From Guillardia theta CCMP2712 (taxonomy: Eukaryota; Protista; Cryptophyta): a stretch of DNA of 64,000 bases. Positions 9,662 through 52,924 of this stretch are shown here, piece by piece. The translations under genes were made by a program, and so were the position numbers. The notes under the pieces were generated by a model. That model did no database searches and had not been told where the DNA came from. It saw only the letters and a program-made list of their open reading frames with translations. The stretch covers positions 358,011 through 422,010 of the forward strand of contig NW_005434601.1 in NCBI RefSeq assembly GCF_000315625.1, in the 5' to 3' direction. Within the stretch, counting starts at the first letter, position 1, and each line of letters starts with the position of its first letter.

Positions 9662-12266
9662 TTACTTCTTCTCCAGTCCCTCATACCTGCACATTCACGT
9701 TACCTCCTCCCTACCCCGCTTCCTCCTCCTCCTCCTCCTCCTCCTCCTCCTCTAGCTCCCCTACCACCTCCTCTATCTTATCATTTCCTTACCCTCCACT
9801 CACTTCCTCTCCTTACCATCTCTGCAGTTTCTCGCAGGCTCGCTCCATGTCTTGGGTGGCACCGGCGAAGCTGAAACGAATGAACTCTCCTCCTCGCGAG
9901 AGGTCGAAGTCCTGCCTCACGTCAGGCGGCCACCATGGGCCTCCTTGACTTCCAGTTCAAGCAGGCGATCGAGAAAAAGGGGATAGTCGAAGAGGAGGCG
10001 GAGGAGGAGGAAGGAGAAGAGTACGTAGAGGAAGGGGAGGACAGAGGAGAAGGGAATACCAAGCCGGGAGTGACGGCAACGGAGCAGCTGCGTCACGAGA
10101 GTGAGGACGGGGGAAGAGGAGGAGGCAGACTCACTCAGCGAGGATCTTCTTGGCGAGCTCCATGCTGTCCTTACAGCTGCATCTCATCTCAAACAAGCTC
10201 TCTCCTCCTCCCCTCCCCCACCCTGCGGGTCCCAGCATGTGCTTGACGTGCGCGTAGATGTAGAAGGCTCCCTGACGTATCGGTCAGAGATGAAAAGTAG
10301 AGGACGGAAGAAAGGGAGAGGAGGATGAAGAGCGAGGGAGGGCGTGGAGAAAGAGAAAGACGAGAGGTGGATGAGATGGAGCATGACGAGGTGAAGGAGG
10401 TTGACGAGGTGGTGGTGGTGGAGGAGGAGGAGGAGGAGGAGATCAGAAGGAGGAGGAGATCAGAAGGAGGAGGAGGAGGAGGAGGAGGAGGAGGAGGAGG
10501 AGGAGGAGGAGGAGGANNNNNNNNNNNNNNNNNNNNNNNNNNNNNNNNNNNNNNNNNNNNNNNNNNNNNNNNNNNNNNNNNNNNNNNNNNNNNNNNNNNN
10601 NNNNNNNNNNNNNNNNNNNNNNNNNNNNNNNNNNNNNNNNNNNNNNNNNNNNNNNNNNNNNNNNNNNNNNNNNNNNNNNNNNNNNNNNNNNNNNNNNNNN
10701 NNNNNNNNNNNNNNNNNNNNNNNNNNNNNNNNNNNNNNNNNNNNNNNNNNNNNNNNNNNNNNNNNNNNNNNNNNNNNNNNNNNNNNNNNNNNNNNNNNNN
10801 NNNNNNNNNNNNNNNNNNNNNNNNNNNNNNNNNNNNNNNNNNNNNNNNNNNNNNNNNNNNNNNNNNNNNNNNNNCGTACGAGGGAGGTGGAGGAGGAGGA
10901 GGAGGAGGATTGCGGACAAGGACCTGTGGCCTGCTGAGCTCGTGGAAGCCAGCCTTCGGGAGTCCATTAAGGAGAACCTGCAAGGCTGTGAGGAGACGCA
11001 GCGAGAAAGGAAGGGAATGAAGCATCGCTGGTCGGAACAAGGGGAAGAGAAAGCCGAGGAGGAGGACGGAGGCGGGGGAGAAGGAGTTAAGCACCTCTCG
11101 GTTTTTCTTGTACCGTTCGACATGTTGTTCCAATTCATCTATGCAATCAAATGCAGCAATTCCTGCAAAGAGAGTCGACGAGACGAGGAAGAGGAGCAGG
11201 AGGCGAGTCAGAAGGAGATCAGTCAGAGGGAGGCGGAGGAGAGAGGAAGGGTCACCAGCGAGCTGGGAGAGGGTGGGAGCGGAGATGAAGAAGTTCTGCA
11301 GGAGATTCTCAAAAGATTGAGCAAGCTGAGGATCCTGGCAGACGATCCATCCCAGTCGCCATCCTGTCATCGAGTAGTACTTGGAGAAGCTGTTGATGAT
11401 CACCTGCTCCTCCTTCAGTTCCCCCTTCCCCCTGCGCCTCCTCCACCTTCTCCGCACGCTCACCGCGTCCTTCTTGAACTGCAGCGCCGAGTCGGCGCGG
11501 CCCTCCATGATGATGCCGTGGTAGATCTCGTCGGAGATGAGGCGGATGCCGTGAGTCGAGCAGCAGGAGCAGAGGTCCTGCATCTCCGACGAGCGCAAGA
11601 TGGTCCCCGTGGGGTTGGAAGGAGAGGCGAGGATGAGCCCATGGATCTTCCCTCCCTTCATCGCTTCTTCCAGCATGGCGCGAGTTGGCTGCCAGTTCGT
11701 CTCCTCCCCCACTGGCAGCTCAACCACCTCAACTCCGAGAGCCTCTAAGATGTTGCGGTAGCACGGATACCCAGGAGAAGCCATTGCCACCCGATCGCCA
11801 TGGTCGAAGGCGCCAGTGAAGGCAACGATGAAGGCTCCACTGCTACCTGTTGTGACCAGCACACTACCTGCATCAACCTCCACCCCGTAGCTTGTCTTAT
11901 AGTGCCCTGCTATCTTCTCCCTCAGCTCCCGCACCCCTGCTGCCTCTGTGTAGCCCAGCTTCTCTTCCCCCTGCAATGCGGCGCTCGCAGCTTCCCTGAC
12001 CTGTAGCTCTGTCAACAACAACATCCATCCTCGCCTCTATCCTGGCTGCTTCCAACTTTACCCTCAACCTCACCCCCTCCGCTCCTTTCCTCCACTTTGC
12101 CTTCCCTCCTTCTCCTCCTCTCCTCTCGTTGTCCTCTCACCTTCCTGGGTGCAGGGGAGGAGGGCTGGCCGACTTCAAGGTGGATGGTCTCCTTGGGGTC
12201 CTTCGCCAGCGCCTCTCGCATCACCTCCATCACCAGGAACGCGCGCGTCCGCCCTCGCTCCGACAT
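9662..12266 (-). CDS. PLP-dependent aminotransferase class I/II (aspartate aminotransferase-like), multi-exon, spans the gap at 10517-10874
   Basis: IHLEVGQPSSPAP, GYTEAAGVRELREKIA, VTTGSSGAF, PGYPCYRN, SPSNPTG, ISDEIYHG, INSFSKYYSMTGWRLGW (PLP lysine), DFDLSRGGEFIRFSFA. Last exon (WYEGLEKK* at 9662, versus a stop at 9813) is uncertain. Confidence 0.9.
10517..10874. other. Scaffold gap flanked by (GGA)n; other gaps at 36004-36103, 54570-54669 and 56512-56611
   Basis: N runs adjacent to simple repeats. Confidence 0.98.
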
Positions 12267-12520
12267 GGCGGCCCCCCCGATACCGAGATTGAGGTGGGCC
12301 AGGAGGGGATGAGGGTATAAGAGTGAGGGGGATGATGCAGGGGAGGGCGGTATGAGGGGCTGTGGCAGCGGCACTGCTGGGGCGGGCCTGTGAGAGGGGG
12401 GAAGGGGGGGCAGGGAAGGGGGATGAGGGCGAAGGGGTATGAGGGAGATGATTTAATATGGCTCTTGGCGAAGGGTCAGGGTTTTTAAGAGGCGCCGTCG
12501 TCCCGCCCGCCGTCTAGACC

Positions 12521-13257
12521 ATGCTGTTCTCCCGCCTCGTAAGTTCCTGCTCGCCTCCTCCTCCCGATTCCGCTGCGCCTCTTCCCCTGTCTCCCTGTCT
12601 CCCTGTCTCCCTCTCTTCTTTCTTTCTTGTATTCATCCTTGTATCCTGTTGTATTCTTCAATTGTGTGCCCCCATCCATTTTGTCCTCTCAAACGTTGCT
12701 GGATAGCTTCGTTGTTTCGTTTGAAAACTCGAGGTGCTTCTAGCGCTTTGCTCCGTCTGACTTAACGAGTATTATGATTCATGTTCTAAGATTTTTCACA
12801 AACGTTGTTTGTTTTGAAGATCGTGCATCCTGGTTCACTCGCCTGTAGTTGCTGTTGCCTTGCTTTGGGACAAAAAACGAAGCGATGAAACGATTTGTTC
12901 TTAATCGGATCGTATCTTCGTTTTCAGTGTTGTTTTCTAATTCTCTGGAAAATTCTGTTTTGTTCTGCATTACTTGTCTGAGCAATATCCTGTTCCCTTG
13001 ATCGCATCCTGTGGTATCCAACGGTTGTGGAGGGCTCACATTGTGTGACAGGATTGCTCGTTCCCTGCCTACTTCTACACCCAGCCCATGGCTACTGGAC
13101 CTGGCTTCTACGACAACTTGTGCCCCCAGTCCTGGCAGGATGGCTCCGCTGCCACCTTCACCCTCCAGGATCCCCACCAGCAGAGTAAGAGCTTGTTGAT
13201 TTTTTGTGAGCTTTACCTGACCTGCTTTGTACAGCCTTCGATTGCCCGGGAAACTAA
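12521..13257 (+). CDS. 57-aa micropeptide, copy A (exons 12521-12538, 13052-13184, 13235-13257)
   Basis: MLFSRL|DCSFPAYFYTQPMATGPGFYDNLCPQSWQDGSAATFTLQDPHQQ|TFDCPGN*. Canonical GT..AG junctions are in phase. The paralog at 31418-32368 differs almost only at synonymous sites. Confidence 0.8.
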
Positions 13258-13375
13258 GCTATCCGTTTGTATATGTGATTACGTAAACGGTTTCGAAAAA
13301 CTTCAATCGTGTCTGCGTTTCGGTTTTCTCCCCATCCCTCAACCCGATCTAGAAGATCTATTTTTATTCGTCATG

Positions 13376-15149
13376 TTACAAGGCTACAGCCGCTTGGAGG
13401 ATTCTCCGCCACTGGCAAACACATCATGTCAAATCGAACATATGCTGCCTCAACGCTCACCTGAGCTGACGGAGAGCCGTGATCGCACAGCGAGCAAGGG
13501 CCATCCTACAAACAGCTGTTACTGGCAGCAGCTTACTTGTATCACAAATTACCGATGTGTGATGGGCCTCTCCAGTCAAGGCTTCCATGCTGTTCCCCAC
13601 GTATGTGATCATCCCAAGATCATAGCGGACGGACCAAACCACACTGCTCAAAGACAAAGGAGATCAGCAAAGCGCAAGATGACGAGCAGCGGTGAGATCA
13701 CGAAGAGATAGCAAAAAAAGCTCGAACATACCTGTCTCCGATAGAGTCGTAGTAGGATCTTGCTCCAGGAGGGAGGGAGCCCAAGTGAACTCCATATATT
13801 CTGTTGTCCCTCCCTGATTCCAACATGCTGGGCATGCCCGCGAAGACCGTGTTGTGAACATTCCTCTTGGACCTGTAGAAGGGACCATCCTGACCAGTCG
13901 GGCAGATTAGAACAGCATCTTCCAAGGCTGCCTTTGTCACCTGATATTCCACTGGTCGGATTTGCCACCTGCAACCCGCTAGTGTCACTGACACGACTGG
14001 AGCACCATTTGAAGCAAGCACCCGAAGATCTCGTTGATGACCGAGAGGGAGCCGAACCCGCCGAGGAAGACGATGTTGTTTCCTGACGCTCGGATTACAT
14101 CGGTCCAAGTACATCAAGTTGCGGATCACCAGAGGATGCGTAACCTCGCAGGTCTGTCTTGGAGATCATGTGCAGGTCCGGATAATCGGTGAACGAAGGG
14201 AAGACTGCACCGACCTGTAAGAATCGTGCATCTCCAACATTGATCAGTCACCGATAGTATGTGCAGCTTCATCCCACGCTGCAGCTCTGATTGTAGCAGT
14301 TCGAAAATCTCCGAACGTTTTCACCATCACCTGGTTCAGGAGGAGTGTCAGTGCGGGTGACTCGAGGCTCACAATGCCGGCCACCTCGGGGTGATCTTTT
14401 CGTAAGACGCTCTTGAAGTTGGTGATGGAGTTCGAGTGCCCATAGAGCGAAGTCTCTGGACCAGTGTACAGGTAAATCTGTCGAACCTAGTCAATCCGTT
14501 GACAATGCGTGGCCCCATGGCAGCGGCGACTCACAACGTTCGGGTAGTACTGCGGATGCTCTGGCCGCAGCGGTTCTGGGGAGCAGGTGAGCACGAGGGG
14601 CAGCAAAACATGCGCTCACTCACCCCACTGAACTTTCTGCCCTCCAAACTGCTCGAGCGACGACACTCGAGCACCTCGTTGTTGCGCAAGAAGCACATCC
14701 CCACGCTGACAAGCATGATCGTGAGACGAGTTGCCTCACCAGTTCACAAAGTGCAGGGGATGAAAGTAAACCTGGAAGATCAGGGACGGCATCCTCTCTA
14801 CGAGGAGAAGGGGACATAGTACGAGGGCGGCGAATACAGCCTGCAAGTCGTTGAATCAAGATCCGATTTCTCAATTCCACTACTCTCATCTCAACATCTC
14901 AACGCCGTACATGCAAGTTCAAATATCTCACACTTGAACATCAAGACAAGACGACTGATCAAAAGGGAAGCATCGAAACAAAACAGCACCCAAACCCTCA
15001 GACACGTAGAAACATTTTCTCGATGAGGGCAAAGAGCTCCAGCGAAGAAGACCAACAAGGCTGTGGTCTAATACCGATCTTGACATCATCACTCCACTCC
15101 CATCCACTCTGATCTTCAACATAATACATACGCCTCCATGAAAGCTCAT
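13376..15149 (-). CDS. Secreted-type protein X (copy A), ~270 aa, about 12 exons; putative class-I GATase/ThuA-like fold
   Basis: Spliced: MSFHGG|AVFAALVLC|LLSSPALCEL|RGDVLLAQQRGARVSSLEQFGGQKVQW|EPLRPEHPQYYPNV|VRQIYLYTG...AAWDEAAHTIVFPSF...KTDLRGYASSGNNIVFLG...DGPFYRSKRNVHNTVF...SLPPGARSYYDSIG...VRYDLGMITYVG...WRRILQAAVAL*. Colinear homology with 29678-30897. The 5' exons are less certain. Confidence 0.75.
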
Positions 15150-15770
15150 CGTCCCTCTCGTTTCCCTCCTGCTCCTGCTCCTGCTCCTGCTCCTCCTCTC
15201 ACTCACCGCTGCTCGCAACCCCATGGCGACCCTTGGCCCTTTTCTTCAATGGTTCCTTATTTTACCGGTTCCTTGTATTAGAGATTCCCTCCTGCGGTTC
15301 TTTGTTTCAACGGTTCCTTGTATTCTCCTGAAAAAATCTTGTCCGAACATGAACGAGCAGCCGCAAGTCAGAGGATCAGGGGCTGCGAAGTAGACGGAGA
15401 CGGAGACGGAGACGCAGAGGGAGAGGGGGAGGGAGGGAGGGAGGGAGGGAGGGAGGGAGGGAGGGAGGGAGGGAAGGAGGGAGGGAGTGAGTGAGGGAGG
15501 GAGTGAGGGAGGGAGGGGGGAGAGAGAAGGAGGAAAGGAGGGAGAGGGAGAGACGAGAGGAGAGGCAGGGGGAGGAGAATGGGGGGGGGGGAGGAGGAGA
15601 GAGGCGACGCATCCTTACGGCTGCTCTACAGACCTGGATCTTCGGCTCAAGGACTATCGATGAACTGGCCCTGACTGCACGATTTGGAAGCCTTGGACTA
15701 GAGGAAGGGAGGAGGTGGAGGAAAAGACTAGAGGAAGAGACTTGAGAGCATCTTCAAGGAGAAAGGGTTG

Positions 15771-27097: not shown

Positions 27098-27247
27098 TGA
27101 CGTGTTGATATCTGATGCGATCTCAGGACGACTCGACCCCGAGGCTTCCGGCATATGTAAAGTAGGAGAGGAGGAGGGAGAGGAGGAGGGAGGCGAGGAG
27201 GGAGCAGACGATGTTTCACTCACTTCATTCTCCTCTCATCATCCCCA

Positions 27248-28131
27248 TCACCTCACGAGCTCGATCACGCTATCCACACTCTCTACAATCACATCCGCGT
27301 TCCCCCTCAGATCCTCCTCCGTCCCCACGCCGGACAGCACCCCGATGCTTCCTGCCACCCCCGCTGTCTTGCCATCCGCAGATCAGCGTTGGTGTCTCCT
27401 ACGATGATCGTCTCCTCCGGCCTCACACCGAGTTTCTTGCAGAAGTTCCACGCGTTGTCCGGCGCTGGCTTGGGCACGTTGAACGAGTCATCCCCGCAGA
27501 TGGAATGATGCACCATGCTAGAAATCCCCAGGCTCCGCAGGTTCAGCTCCGTCGGCCTCCTCGCGTCCGACGTGCACACCCCAGTCATGATGCCCATCCT
27601 GTGCAGCGTTTGGAACAAGGTCTTGGTGCACCTGCTGATGGGGGACACCTCTCCCTCCTCGCACTCAGCCCAGCACTCCCTCACCGCCTCCCTTGCGTCT
27701 CCTTCCTTCATCCCTCCTTGCTCTGTCAGACAAGCTTCCACCGCCTTTCTGATCAAGGGCTGCGCCGCCCACGCCATGAGCGACTTCTCTCCGCGTACCT
27801 TCCTCAACTCCATGTCGTACCCAAGGGTGTCTGCGAGAGGAGTTCGCAGCTGCTCTCCGCACTTGCTCACGAAACGAGAGATCAGATCGTCTGCCCACTT
27901 GCTCCAAGTTGCGTCGAAGGAGATGAGGGTCCCATCCTTGTCAAAGATGACGAGCTTCACTTTCTGTGTCTGAGAGGGAGCAACCATGGTTTCAACCATC
28001 GGGCTCATCGCGCTGTAGGAGGCTCGGCTGATCGAGCTTGCATTCTGCAGCAGAGGAGGTCTGAGGGAAGGGACGACAAGTCCCTTTGAGTGAGCGATAG
28101 CTCCTGTAGCGATGCTCTTGATGAGAGACAT
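27248..28131 (-). CDS. HAD-superfamily hydrolase (phosphoglycolate phosphatase-like) with mitochondrial-type presequence; apparent 1-bp frameshift near 27372
   Basis: LVIFDKDGTL (motif I), GVCTSD (II), PKPAPD (III), IIVGDTNADL (IV). The conserved tail GKTAGVAGSIGVLSGVGTEEDLRGNADVIVESV lies in a shifted frame. Confidence 0.85.
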
Positions 28132-29677
28132 GTTTCAAGCTTCGAAGCGCGGGTTTCGTTTGATGACAAAAAGGTTCCTACAAGTCTTCCTCGTTGACGC
28201 CTCGTCTTCCAAGTGTAAGAGTTCTGTTCGTCTGCCTGTCTTCCTCCTCTCTGTGTGTCTTGACCCGTGTCTCTGAACTTGTTCTGCTCGTCGTGCTCTC
28301 CCCTGAGACTCTCTCGCTCTTCTACAACTTGGGTTTGCACTTTCGGAGAGACAAACAGGCGTACCCACTGTACCCTTTCTCATCACCCACCCCAATGGTC
28401 ATGGACCACCAATTGCTAAAAATCACCCCTACTCTTTACTATTTACACCCACCACTTCCTCGGACCATAAAACCTTCTTCTAAATAGAACCCTACATTAG
28501 ATCACCCTACCCCCTCAAAAGGGCCAGGTACCAGCTACGCCTTCATACCCCACCCAATCACTGCAATTGCACCCCAAACCACACCATTCTGGTACCCTAC
28601 CCTTCAGTTCATCACCCCCCTTCCTCCATACCTACCATACTATTTTTCAGAATTTTGTACTAAACGTACCCCTATGAAAGTACCCTACCTCTACTATTTC
28701 TAAGTACTCACACTCAAGTACCCCTGTCTCCCCCTGGCCCCCCATTTAGCCGCCCACCAATCATGATTTATACACCCCCACCCCATTGTACAAAACAAAG
28801 TACCCTTACCATATTTTTTTTGTTTAGAAAGGGGGGTATTGAGGATACCCCCACCCATCCCATCAGATGAGTGAGAAACCACCCCCTTAGAAACCAGTTT
28901 TATACCTTTATGAGGCTCTCTCACCACCCGTCCTCCTGTTCTTCGTGTGTGACTACGCCTCACACCGGGTGACCGTCGGGCCCGATCACTCAGTACGGGA
29001 GTGACTAACTTACAGTTAGTAAGTTCCGACAGCGGCGGTGGCAATCGGCACACTGAGTGACCGTAGCCGCACAGCCAGTGACAGTTGACCGTCCGACCGT
29101 CTTACGCCGTACCGGCGGTGACTCGGACGGTGCAGGCCGGGCTCCGAAGAGGCGGCCGCACTGCACACTGACGCGGCCCGGCGAGCGCCCGCGGCCGCGC
29201 CGCGGCTCTCGACTCGGTCCGGGGCCGACGCCGGACACAGGCTGTGACCCGACGGTCCGAGCGAGTCCGAGATCGTACGCCGGGGGGTGCCGCAGTGACT
29301 GCCGGGTGCGGCAGTGATCGGACCGTGACCGACCCGGTCACGGTGACGGTGAGTCACTGTGCCACAGCCTGACCGTCGGACTCACAGCCTAGTCCGAGGA
29401 GGCTGACGGTGAGGGCCGCCCGGCGGCCGGCGGGCCGCTCGGAGTTACTTTGGCATGGTCACCAAGTCTCCTGCAGGCGGGCTGACTCAGTGAGTAACTC
29501 AAACTTGTACTCCGTCGGTTATGAGCCGCAGGCCGCTTCACCGGCCCCGCGGCTGTCACTAACGCCGTACGGTCGGAGGCCGGGCCGGGCCCGGGCGCCG
29601 GGCCCGGGCCAGCCTGTTTCGGTTGGATTTTGTAACGGTCAGGCGCGAATCGTCGCCTGCCCCTTGGCGCGTCCGCC

Positions 29678-30897
29678 ATGTCCTCCTTTTCCTCACGCGC
29701 CGTCAACACAGCCGGCGCAGCAGGCGCTCTCGTCGTCCTTCTCGCTCTGGCAGCATGGCAGGGATCCTCCTCCTCCTCCTCTGCGGCTTCGAAGGTTGGT
29801 TTCCTCTGATACTCTGGACCCAGCATGTTGAGGGCTGTGCTATGCTGTTCATTGCGGACTGTATGGAATGAGTCATGAAATAAGGAGACTAGAGTGTTGT
29901 ACCGTCCTCTCTCTGTCTGTGATGACCTGATGATGCTGATATGTCATGGTCTCTGATCCTTGACGTCCGTCGGTCATCTTTGTTCTGAGACTTGCTGGCA
30001 GTTGGCCGCTAACAGGCAGCAGACCACCGAGCTCTCGTTCCTGCAAACCTCTGGTGGGTGGCAGCAAGGAGAAGAGGGCGCTACCTTGCTGCATGACTAA
30101 CACTGCGACAGCTTTCGTGGACCAGATTTACATGTACGCCGGACTTGCCGTGGACAACAAGCACGAGACCGGATTTATCGCCAAGGAGATCAGAAAGCAC
30201 AATTATCAGACTGTGAGCTCACAGCGACTTCTTGCCTCTTGTCCTCAAGTTGTCACAGATGGTTCGCCTCTTCACTTCCCTGGATGATGCCACCTTCCGG
30301 GCTGTCTTGTGGGATCAGGCTGTTCACTGCCTGGTGAGCCTTGACCCTCCTCCGCCTCGCCTTCCACCTTCTTGTTGACTCCGGGTAATGTTAACCTGAT
30401 CCGGCAGGTTTGGCCGCCTTTTGTTCGCTACCCTGGTATCAGTGAGACCGCCAAGACTGATCTCCGTGCTTACACTGCTGCTGGAAACAACGTAAGCACG
30501 CACATGGTGACCTCGCCCTCTGGTCCTCACAGAGTCGTGCTTGCAGGTGGTCTTCTTGGGCAACTACGTTGCTGTGCAGTTCATGAACGATGTCTATGGA
30601 TTCCAGTTGACCGATGACTATCAGAACGGTCCTTACTACCGTAACGACCGCAACGTCCGCAACACTCCCTTCCAGTACCTCCCGTCTCGCGTGGAGCAGG
30701 CTTCAATAGAGACTTATGCTGTCAAGTCAAGATCTCTCCCTCCTGGCGGCAAGTCCATGCTCGACACTCTGGGGGCTACTGTTGCGTTCGTCATCCGCTA
30801 TGACTTGGGTACCGTCTGTTACATTGGATACAACTACAACACTCCGTTCCATGCAGACCAATGGACCAGAGTTCTCCACTGTGCCATTGACATGTAA
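29678..30897 (+). CDS. Protein X (copy B), paralog of 13376-15149, with N-terminal signal/anchor; putative GATase/ThuA-like fold
   Basis: MSSFSSRAVNTAGAAGALVVLLALAAWQGSSSSSSAASK|QTTELSFLQTS|AFVDQIYMYAG...NYQT|MVRLF...WDQAVHCL|VWPPF...KTDLRAYTAAGNN|VVFLG...GPYYRNDRNVRNTPF...SLPPGGKS...IRYDLGTVCYIG...QWTRVLHCAIDM*. Introns are canonical. Confidence 0.8.
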
Positions 30898-31417: not shown

Positions 31418-32368
31418 TTAGTTGCCCGGGCAGTCAAAGGCTGTACAAAGCAGGTCAGGTAAAGCTCACAACCAACATCAACAAGCTCTTACTCTGCTGG
31501 TGGGGATCCTGGAGGGTGAAGGTGGCAGCGGAGCCATCCTGCCAGGACTGGGGGCACAAGTTGTCGTAGAAGCCAGGTCCAGTAGCCATGGGCTGAGTGT
31601 AGAAGTAGGCAGGGAAGGAGCAATCCTGATGCAAATTGTCAGGCAGTGATACTTGTGAAATTTTGTTTTCAGGAACATGCACCAACACCGTTACTCACAA
31701 CCAGATGACAAAGTGTAAGTATTTGACCTTACTCTCAGAGATTATCAATTGGATACAGACAAAAAAATCGGAACTACGAGTTGTTTGAATCTATTTCGCA
31801 GTCAACAGAAACAAACTACCCTGCAAGAAAGGAGTCGAACACCTCGTGTTCAGACAATTCTGATGCCTCAAGGGAATACAGAACCAAGAAGTATTGCAAA
31901 CAGGGGATCAAGAACATGGGGATCAAGAAAATTGTCTCAGAGACAATGGATATGGTCATCAATTTAGAACAACTGAATATTGTAGAGTGGCAAAAAGGTC
32001 AAACATTGAGAGAACTTTCATAACAAACTAGTTCGATAACGCCTTTTCACAACGACCATGGTTGCGACGAAGAGATATCACAACAATAAGAGAAGTACAA
32101 AAGAAGTAATATGGTCATACGAAGTTAATACGGGAAGAAATACAACAGTGAGAGGGAAGCATCCGCACAGAGGGGGCCAGGTGTAAGACAAGCGCGAATC
32201 GACCAGATAAGAAATCAGAAGCCAACGTTGGAGTGGAGGGAAGAAGAGGGCACAAACGCTAGAGAATGAAGGGGACAATGATGAGGAGAGATTCTGCATA
32301 GCAGGAGAGGCCGGAAGGCCACGGAAACGGGCGGCATGAGCGATACTCACAAGCTTGGAGAAGAGCAT
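31418..32368 (-). CDS. 57-aa micropeptide, copy B (exons 32368-32351, 31625-31493, 31440-31418)
   Basis: MLFSKL|DCSFPAYFYTQPMATGPGFYDNLCPQSWQDGSAATFTLQDPHQQ|TFDCPGN*. Exon structure is identical to copy A. Confidence 0.8.
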
Positions 32369-32762
32369 TGCGGCAACGATGACCCTTGGTGAGACCGAGA
32401 GAGAGATAAAGTAGGGTACAGGGGTGGTTGTCTGGTCAAACTGGGGGGTGGGAATGGAAAAGGGAGGGGGTCCAGATTTTTTCTTTCCGAAGAGCCGTCT
32501 GTCGGTGAGGTAGGGTCATGGTGTCTGAGGGTAGGGTGATAAAAGATAAAATGAGGGGTACTCAGCTTATGAAATCCACCACCCCTCCCGTCAAACGACC
32601 CCTGACCCTTCAGCAGAATCGGAGCCCGCATCCCCGATCACATGAACTTTGAACCTGAACTTTACATAGAACTATTGCCGGGCTATTTACTCGACGCCTT
32701 CCTGAACTTTTGGACAGTCGCATTATGAACTTCTCAAGGGCCAGGCAACGGCAGCGACCGAC

Positions 32763-33230
32763 ATGGCGGCGGCTCCCTGGAGGTCCTCCTACCACATGCC
32801 CAACGGGCCCATCGCCATGTCCATGGACGCGCATGATCCCTGGGCCAACCTTGTGAGGGGCAACCGCCGGCTCTCGTGCGATGTCAGGGTCTCTGCCCTC
32901 GGCCATGCTCGCAACCTCAGGCTTATTGAGGCAAAGAAGAAGACGAGTCGAGTTCCAAAGGAGTCGCGCGCACAGAACTTTGAGTTCAACAGGGGGCCTG
33001 TGCTGGACATGTTGCCCTCAGGGAGCTCTGCCAATGCTCCTCCTTTCCTCCTGGGGGGAAGGTTGGGCGGGTCAGGAACCCCCGGGGCCTCTACAAAGGG
33101 CATAAAATCGACAGCAGGGTGGAGCAGCGCATGCGCACCGGACGAAGTGGCACCCAAGGTGATCGAGAGGCTGAGGGTTAAGTCGAGCATGCCGTCCTCA
33201 GCTGTTGGCGGTGCGTTCGAGAGAGTATGA
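32763..33230 (+). CDS. Hypothetical 155-aa single-exon protein
   Basis: Clean ATG-to-stop ORF with coding-like composition, downstream of a GAACTT-rich intergenic stretch. No recognisable motif. Confidence 0.45.
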   Translation: MAAAPWRSSYHMPNGPIAMSMDAHDPWANLVRGNRRLSCDVRVSALGHARNLRLIEAKKKTSRVPKESRAQNFEFNRGPVLDMLPSGSSANAPPFLLGGRLGGSGTPGASTKGIKSTAGWSSACAPDEVAPKVIERLRVKSSMPSSAVGGAFERV

Positions 33231-33504: not shown

Positions 33505-34178
33505 TTATCGGCAGGAGGGGTTCAACTCAGGGTCGCACCAGGCGTACTGCACCTTGCCGGCAACTCCGTCCATGTTGGGAGGGAACGCGGGTCTGGCACA
33601 TGAGTCAGCGAGCACAACTGATCAGGAAAGGCAAAGCGCTCACCCCATGGGGCCGGTGGATCCGATCATGTCGTGAGCAGCCTGATGCCAGATAGCGTTC
33701 TGCTCGCGTTGTCAGAAGCTTCCATCCACACCACAACAACAGCAGCTTCACTCACCGCCTTGAAGTAGTCGAGGTCTCTGGCGCAGTCTGCAGGATCAGC
33801 GCAGAACTGGGAAGCAGGATCCAGTTCAAGGGACTGGAGCCTGGCCTGTTTCAACGCTGGTCTCCTGCGGTGAATGGCCTTGATGTGCTTGGACTTGTAG
33901 GCGGAAGATCCGAGGAAGGGAAGCTGTGGGTTGATGTTCAGCCTGGAAGCCACGAACTTGGTGGGTAGAGAGTCCCCCCGAGCAACGAGCACAGCGTTGA
34001 TCAGCGCATCAGTGCCATCGTCCTTGTCGACCTGAGAAAGAGAAACTCTGCGAGAAGAAGCGATGACCACAACCCCCACGACAAGAAGAGCTGCGCCCAC
34101 GGCGAGCAAGACAGACTTCTTCTGATTCTTATTGCTGGACACCTCAGGTGCTCCTCCAAAGAAGGTACCGTCTGTCAT
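33505..34178 (-). CDS. Type II membrane-anchored precursor-like protein with C-terminal 4-Cys domain (3 exons)
   Basis: MTDGTFFGG...KKSVLLAVGAALLVVGVVVIASSRRVSL...KQARLQSL-ELDPASQFCADPADCARDLDYFKA|NAIWHQAAHDMIGSTGPMG|PAFPPNMDGVAGKVQYAWCDPELNPSCR*. Both introns are canonical and in phase. Confidence 0.7.
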
Positions 34179-51242: not shown

Positions 51243-52924
51243 CTTACCGGCACGGCGGGACTTGTTGACCTCCACAGTAAAGGCCCGACCCTGTGACACT
51301 GAGTGATTCGCCGTGACGTGCTGAGGCCTCAGGAATCCGATGAGCCTCAAAGTTCAGCCTGAGTCAACTGTAGTCGGTGAGTCAGTGGCCCGGTGACTCA
51401 GGCTGCCAGTGAGCCCCGGGGCCGGCCGTGCCGGCGGCGGGGCCAGCCCGGTGACGGTGGCCGTACGGTCCCGGCGATCCGAGCCGGCGAGGCTCTGAGA
51501 TGCGGCGATCTACGCAGATCATATCCCGGGTGCCTCAGCAGTCACTGCACACGGTGCCACGGTGCTTGGAGTACGGTGCTGGGCCTCAGTGAACGGAACT
51601 TCGGAGGCGGCCCCTGCAGGCTGCCAGTACTACTGTACAGGAGTCCGTTCAATGCTTGAACTTCCGAGTTCCGGTGAGAGTCGGAAGACAAGACGGTGCT
51701 GTCCGCCGGAACCGTTGAACCCGGCCGGATATGCCGGATTGACAGATGATCCGCCCCCGGGGCCGATTCCGCAGCCCTCAGTACGGTAAATCCGAGCCCC
51801 GGGCCCGCCTGGCAGCCTTAGGCCCAGCCGATGGCCGGAGTCGCCGGCAGTCGGAGGCTATTTCTGATGCGATGGCAACGCAACTTGAGGCTCTTGAGGC
51901 TCGAGAGCCACCGGGCGACCTCTTCAAGTCCCGAGTTGTGACCCAAGTCTGTGACCAAGATCAAGATTATCGATACCCCACCCTGTCCTTGCATATCTTG
52001 AACTAGTCATCGGGAGGGGTCCGATGATCCGACGCTTGAGGCAGCTGAGCAGCCGCACTGAAGGAGCAACCTCCGCCCACCGGCGAGACCCACGTGACCT
52101 CAACCCGGGGGCCCGTGACTGACTCGCCTCACCGGTCGCTAGGACCCTCACCCCCTTGAAGCCTCTTGCTGTGAGCTTCCCTATGACCCCCATGGCGTAC
52201 GGTAGGCCTTTCTAAGACGAGGCCTAGAGAGAATACTGACCCCACCCCATCCCACTCGCAGCTCTGTGACTCCAGTACCCCTACCCCCTTGATCAACATT
52301 TCCGGTGGGCCGTGACTCCCCACAATGGGCGGTAGTTTGTAGGGGTAAAATGGTCGTTACAACCGTTACATTGTAGCTTCTACGGTCTTGTCTGACGGTT
52401 ATGTTGACCGTTGTGCCCTTTTGGTACCTTCATTCCCTTACGACTCCTGACACCACCCACCCCATAGAACCATCACCCACCCCACCCACTCTTGATTTGA
52501 TGGTGCCTCCTTCGATTTGAGCCTCACGTGTACCCCCACCCCCATACCTCCCACTCAATAGGTTTAAATACACCCGGTCCAATAGGATTTTACGCCCTCT
52601 CACCTACACCTTTCTGTACCCTACCTCCTACCCCTCCGTTCCTTTCCTACACGGGACCCCCCCCCCCCTCTTTTGCCTCCTCAATTTTTCATGATTTTTA
52701 TGGGTAACCCCCCGCCCCCCCAAAGTTCACTTTCGAAGTACTGAGCACCGGTGCATCCCTCCTCAATACTACCCCTTCATTACCACCCCACCCCTAGGTG
52801 GCAACTCTGTGCACCGGAGCCTTCACTTTACTACCGTATCAGTCCTTCCCGCCTCCGACTAGCTGCGTCCCCGGTCCTTGTATCTCCTGATCTTCCCCCG
52901 CTTCCTCCTGTTGCCCCCCTTGCC

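Follow-up and report, generated by a model that had tools for sequence, protein, structure and literature searches.

A near-invariant, spliced cryptomonad microprotein with a short leader: a candidate structural subunit of a lineage-specific assembly

A small gene of three exons lies on the forward strand at 12521–13257 of the window, the 64,000-nucleotide stretch of Guillardia theta DNA analysed here (C73:358011-422010; the genome searched comprised 87.1 Mb in 669 contigs). Exon 1 of this copy, copy A (12521–12538), encodes a six-codon leader, MLFSRL, and is followed by a phase-0 GT..AG intron of 513 nt (12539–13051). Exon 2 (13052–13184) encodes residues 7–50, a near-invariant core; a 50-nt GT..AG intron in phase 1 (13185–13234) separates it from exon 3 (13235–13257), which supplies the last residues and a TAA codon. 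The three exons, the two introns and the 57-residue product with three Cys proposed in the first-pass annotation are all borne out by the sequence. Both predicted junctions are present in transcripts of a raw RNA run, 12538>13052 in 218 reads and 13184>13235 in 126; 12,028 of 19.8 million RNA reads were placed on the window at 90% likeness, with all copies of the gene pooled. The 57-residue gene is real, spliced and abundantly transcribed. Copy A has no N-terminal extension, since an in-frame stop lies two codons above its ATG. A start at the internal Met19, which would leave 39 residues, was rejected, as residues 7–18 are invariant and the spliced transcripts include exon 1.

Copy B lies on the reverse strand, with exon 1 (32351–32368, MLFSKL) matching GUITHDRAFT_154362, exon 2 (31493–31625) giving the same peptide as copy A, and exon 3 (31418–31440); its introns measure 725 and 52 nt. 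Exon 1 lies as far upstream in both copies as had been proposed, and MLFS(R/K)L is kept. G. theta carries four copies, two on C73 and one each on C46 and C58, and residues 7–57 are identical in all of them. Intron 1 holds its position at every locus where it was found, with a length of 323–725 nt, and its sequence is not conserved between copies A and B. An Rfam search over 12000–14000 returned no family in intron 1 and no snoRNA, with one chance match at E 0.69. Intron 2 is absent from the C46 and C58 copies and from 15 of the 32 exon-2 variants described below.

The description of the gene as unannotated was wrong, as exact 57-residue products are present in NCBI and UniProt. Copy A is GUITHDRAFT_154359 (XP_005826725.1) and copy B is GUITHDRAFT_154362 (XP_005826733.1), both labelled hypothetical; GUITHDRAFT_153271 is a partial model of a third copy, and UniRef100_L1IV83 and L1IU39 are the entries of these genes on the UniProt side, labelled hypothetical or uncharacterised. 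A literature search by accession found no paper, among those searched, citing GUITHDRAFT_154359, GUITHDRAFT_154362 or GUITHDRAFT_153271. The microprotein family is real, strongly selected and uncharacterised, and already stands in databases under a hypothetical label.

Purifying selection had been proposed from a comparison of copies A and B, which differ, exactly as claimed, by seven synonymous codon pairs and one R/K replacement (rough Fisher p = 5e-4). The two copies are 96% identical over 13049–13257, intron 2 included, with intron 1 not alignable and the neighbouring genes far apart in sequence. The shared tract looks recently homogenised by gene conversion, which makes the A/B pair a weak test of selection. 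Far stronger support comes from 32 distinct exon-2 DNAs, assembled from metagenome loci, two additional contigs and all four copies of G. theta; the metagenome scan, which returned 53 loci, used exact 8-residue patterns and so favoured close relatives. Within this set 27 of 44 codons vary silently and one changes its residue, with a mean pS of 0.30 and a pN/pS of 0.019, a value inflated by pathway averaging. The proposed frame is the only one conserved: variable sites fall 2/0/28 at codon positions 1/2/3, and all other frames of exon 2 are variable or contain stops. A HMMER search of 1.84 billion representatives, free of the exact-pattern bias, gave the same picture of conservation.

The leader reads M-L-F-[S/Q/T]-[Q/K/R]-L and occupies a six-codon exon in 30 of the 32 variants, always followed by the phase-0 intron. 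Its positions 4 and 5 vary, and invariance starts at residue 7, directly after the leader Leu. Residues 7–57 form a chain of 51 residues and 5,668 Da with a pI of about 4 and no Lys or Arg; the full 57 residues contain no Val or Glu, no repeats and a single basic residue. The proposed lack of a classical signal peptide held up, with a maximal 15-residue hydropathy of 0.56 and no hydrophobic stretch, and no membrane segment was found in the 57-residue peptide. Searches were run with exon 2, with the contiguous residues 7–57 of the C58 copy or with the stored 57-residue product. Pfam gave no family for exon 2 at E ≤ 10, and PDB sequence searches (single and profile) and the ESM Atlas returned nothing usable for the peptide. 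Two AlphaFold runs gave no confident monomer, with pLDDT of 54 and 50, values as low as would be expected whenever a protein is short and its alignment shallow. A presumed likeness to thrombospondin type-3 calcium loops found no support in Pfam.

The family extends across the cryptomonads. Residues 7–57 of Hanusia phi are identical to those of G. theta, the Cryptomonas paramecium peptide differs by one residue, and the plastid-free Goniomonas avonlea has a 56-residue orthologue with 82% identity. The presence of this orthologue suggests a gene of the host lineage older than the cryptophyte plastid. A second subfamily, represented in Cryptomonas curvata, in Rhodomonas and in metagenomes, lacks Cys but retains the core, with QML in front of it and RRML behind. 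Its diverged G. theta member lies on the reverse strand at C43:443485-443678 (L005); it has additional introns, is extended at both termini and has orthologues in C. curvata and Rhodomonas. The emphasis that the first-pass annotation had laid on Cys stands in part: the cryptophyte form does carry three, invariant together with one His, but in G. avonlea Ala stands at the middle position and just the first and last remain, so that the number across the family is three, two or none. No credible relative was found outside cryptomonads among the 1.84 billion representatives, viral contigs and prokaryote genomes, and no match was named from kathablepharids or Palpitomonas in collections where short proteins are poorly represented and most matches carry no taxon. 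Weak matches to repeat proteins (P0116, P0118, P0119) were rejected as multi-repeat noise. Two cryptophyte exon-2 products (P0023, P0047) are filed at NCBI as Promethearchaeia archaeon, the label of an archaeal metagenome-assembled genome, which suggests that eukaryotic contigs are present in that bin.

The peptide gene is often paired with a second one. Downstream of copy A, a spliced partner gene of the A type runs in the opposite direction (13400–15224, reverse strand, ends approximate), with an intron at 13411–13461 seen in RNA. Copy B faces a B-type partner (29678–30897, forward strand), whose N-terminus is a hydrophobic signal or anchor and whose pro-region closes with QQTTEL. A multicopy family of 32–38 residues, described below, has this ending too. 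The two types are 37–39% identical, and an orthologue of the B type from a marine metagenome matches the last exon of the G. theta gene with 97% identity. About nine clear loci of this partner family of secreted proteins occur in G. theta; the loci recorded for the family include L048. Tail-to-tail pairing is found at three of the G. theta copies (A, B and C46) and at three other loci (L103/L104, L126 and L131). Since the link is retained by each partner type in two or more organisms, the pair appears to be old. The link is not universal: no partner stands beside the C58 copy, nor beside about 13 other variants for which 1.2 kb or more of DNA downstream was available. With single exons as queries, the partner had no Pfam or PDB match and no catalytic motif was established; language-model features gave weak GATase-like matches for the B-type domain.

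Upstream of copy B lies a GGGT/ACCC-rich region (32369–32768, reverse strand), weakly promoter-like, with 12 motifs per 400 nt compared with 6 for copy A. Such GGGT-rich DNA (46 observed, 10.9 expected) precedes most sibling micro-genes. As a mark of an ejectisome regulon it was given little weight, since it also stands before a HAD-like gene and is absent in other species. The gene concerned, assigned by eye to HAD-like hydrolases, lies at 27200–28132 on the reverse strand, downstream of an ACCC-rich tract. Two intergenic blocks, 28300–29650 and 51300–52850, each combine an ACCC-rich tract with a GC-rich tract that carries recurring short motifs; GC-rich DNA similar to both adjoins the C43 paralog, and the blocks possibly represent a dispersed element or a type of promoter. 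Adjoining copy B at 33505–34178 (reverse strand) is a gene for a membrane-anchored precursor, in which a pro-region ending in QSL, a leader end of the same style as that of the peptide, is followed by a Cys-containing C-terminal part.

Two further families of small proteins bear on the interpretation. The first, of 61 residues and rich in Ala and Tyr, has 30 genome matches in G. theta and is near-invariant in metagenomes; the second, of 32–38 residues, has 16 genome matches in two subtypes with MF..L leaders and no signal peptide (L055-L068). Several copies of the second have an intron just before the ATG, and one stands head-to-head with a 61-residue gene on C222. No gene of the 32–38-residue family adjoins a copy of the 57-residue gene, and no gene of the 61-residue family was found near any of its copies or orthologues examined. 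Tri1, Tri2, Tri3-1 and Tri3-2 are named ribbon proteins of the ejectisome (Yamagishi et al., 2012, as relayed in PMC3982174), and the ejectisins, reportedly described by Ammermann and colleagues in 2013, are grouped with them here. When the G. theta Tri1 accessions were interpolated onto the genome, one fell on C48 at about 349 kb, one near C99 and a third on C50. Diverged 61-residue family members lie at C48:382 kb and on C96, with none on C50 among the matches listed. This proximity makes the 61-residue family probably Tri, by an indirect route; no named Tri record was seen for it. A search for a Tyr-heptad pattern in the DNA was swamped by tandem repeats.

On balance, and by a modest measure, these data favour the peptide as a leader-trimmed structural subunit, acidic and of 5.7 kDa, of an assembly specific to cryptomonads. 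The six-residue leader, ending in [Q/K/R]-L, would be cut after Leu6, by the same protease that would trim other cryptophyte precursors ending in QxL, QML or TEL. Cleavage would leave the acidic chain of 51 residues, which may be closed by a Cys8–Cys54 bond and would have no stable fold alone. The chain would enter a secretory compartment and fold only on packing into a repetitive assembly, with which the partner protein may co-assemble or for which it may chaperone the peptide. Folding only on packing would explain both the near-frozen sequence and the retention of several copies. The leader type, size class, copy pattern and invariance that the peptide has in common with the 61-residue and 32–38-residue families speak for a subunit of this kind; the lack of similarity to the 61-residue family and of a partner beside most loci in other species speak against it, as does the presumed entry into a secretory compartment by a protein with no signal peptide. 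The assembly is tentatively placed in the ejectisome, as a component other than Tri, and the smaller share of our expectation falls to periplast plates, scales or hairs. The G. avonlea orthologue does not separate these two, because Goniomonas has both ejectisomes and periplast plates.

The same lack of a signal peptide or membrane segment would suit a different arrangement, in which the peptide stays uncleaved and serves in the cytosol, the flagella or an organelle as a small subunit of a complex found only in cryptomonads. Extreme conservation and high expression are what a core subunit would be expected to have. This is nevertheless unlikely: the first six residues are variable and leader-like, their ending is common to secreted precursors, and four gene copies would be unusual for a stoichiometric subunit.

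The conserved tail-to-tail partner, in turn, raises the idea that the linked secreted protein has the peptide as its substrate or ligand, the two forming either a precursor with its modifier, as in RiPP systems, or a signal peptide with its binding protein. This agrees with the pairing itself, which involves partners of either type and was observed at three of the four copies in G. theta and at three loci besides, as well as with the weak GATase-like matches of the partner and the layout of the peptide as leader plus core. RiPP precursors have variable cores, however, whereas the 51-residue core here is invariant. The partner also has neither a database match nor an established catalytic motif, and the linkage is not obligatory, so that we regard the proposal as decidedly improbable.

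Less probable still is that the peptide is a Tri protein or ejectisin already described and merely carrying a hypothetical label. Its size of about 6 kDa fits, and its copy counts match those of tri3-2, for which PMC3982174 gives four genes in G. theta and a single one in G. avonlea; Tri3-2 was for this reason the first guess. The 61-residue family, with which the peptide does not align, fits Tri instead, the G. theta Tri1 accessions in PMC3982174 differ from those of the peptide, and no Tri name occurs among the members listed for the peptide's clusters. A role in metal binding or redox chemistry through Cys, or as a secreted peptide of defensin type, would account for three Cys and one His invariant in cryptophytes, but has very little chance with a protein that is acidic, has no signal peptide and no Pfam match, and whose relatives show Ala for the middle Cys in Goniomonas and no Cys in the paralogous subfamily.

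The structural-subunit reading can be carried a step further by giving the partner a fixed role, a version to which we assign a low probability. The locus would then be an ancient two-gene module, in which a microprotein with no signal peptide and a GATase-fold partner contribute a second polymer, distinct from Tri, to the ejectisome or the cell cover. The six-residue leader would give secretory entry and be removed by a cryptomonad leader peptidase, and the peptide would assemble with the partner or be matured by it.

Few proteins are listed so far as parts of the cryptomonad ejectisome and cell cover. The 51-residue chain, near-invariant, abundant and also present in plastid-free Goniomonas, is a concrete candidate for one that these lists lack. 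The leader end common to the probable Tri family and to secreted proteins that do bear a signal points to an undescribed processing step, and possibly hints at an import route that needs no signal peptide. An invariant protein with variable silent sites also offers a compact marker of cryptomonads for metagenomes. The B-type partner, strongly conserved across species and belonging to no Pfam family, is notable in its own right.

Among known systems, R-bodies offer one parallel, as RebB proteins (PF11747) are small subunits of a coiled ribbon and have been reported to be similar to Tri (PMC3583457). Exon 2 of the peptide gave no match to PF11747 in Pfam at E ≤ 10. A genome-wide search for PF11747 was blank and is uninformative, because the controls were equally blank. 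Epiplastins and articulins carry Val-rich, charged repeat domains, in contrast to a peptide of 57 residues with no Val or Glu and no repeats. These inner periplast proteins of cryptophytes (PMC6212826) are structural proteins of the cell cover and share with the peptide their restriction to the lineage. Defensin-like Cys-rich peptides combine a signal peptide with a scaffold of even-numbered Cys, both of which are absent from the 57-residue family. In RiPP systems the gene adjoining the precursor encodes a recognised modifying enzyme; the conserved neighbour of the peptide has no match in Pfam or PDB and only weak GATase-like features.

The closest likeness is to the Tri and ejectisin class, which the peptide appears to resemble in habit while failing the test of homology, the Tri identity of the 61-residue family being itself indirect. 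Both are small, multicopy cryptomonad proteins present in Goniomonas, and the peptide, with 5.7 kDa after loss of the leader, four copies and a Goniomonas orthologue, falls within the class in size and copy number. Like the peptide, the 61-residue probable Tri family lacks a signal peptide, begins with a short MF..L leader and is almost totally conserved, yet the two did not align at E ≤ 100. Their compositions differ, the peptide being acidic (pI 4), rich in Pro, Gly and aromatic residues and supplied with Cys, whereas the 61-residue proteins are rich in Ala and Tyr, have no Pro or Cys and have a pI of about 8. The peptide gene also differs from that family in the intron conserved after its sixth codon and in its linkage to a gene for a secreted partner.
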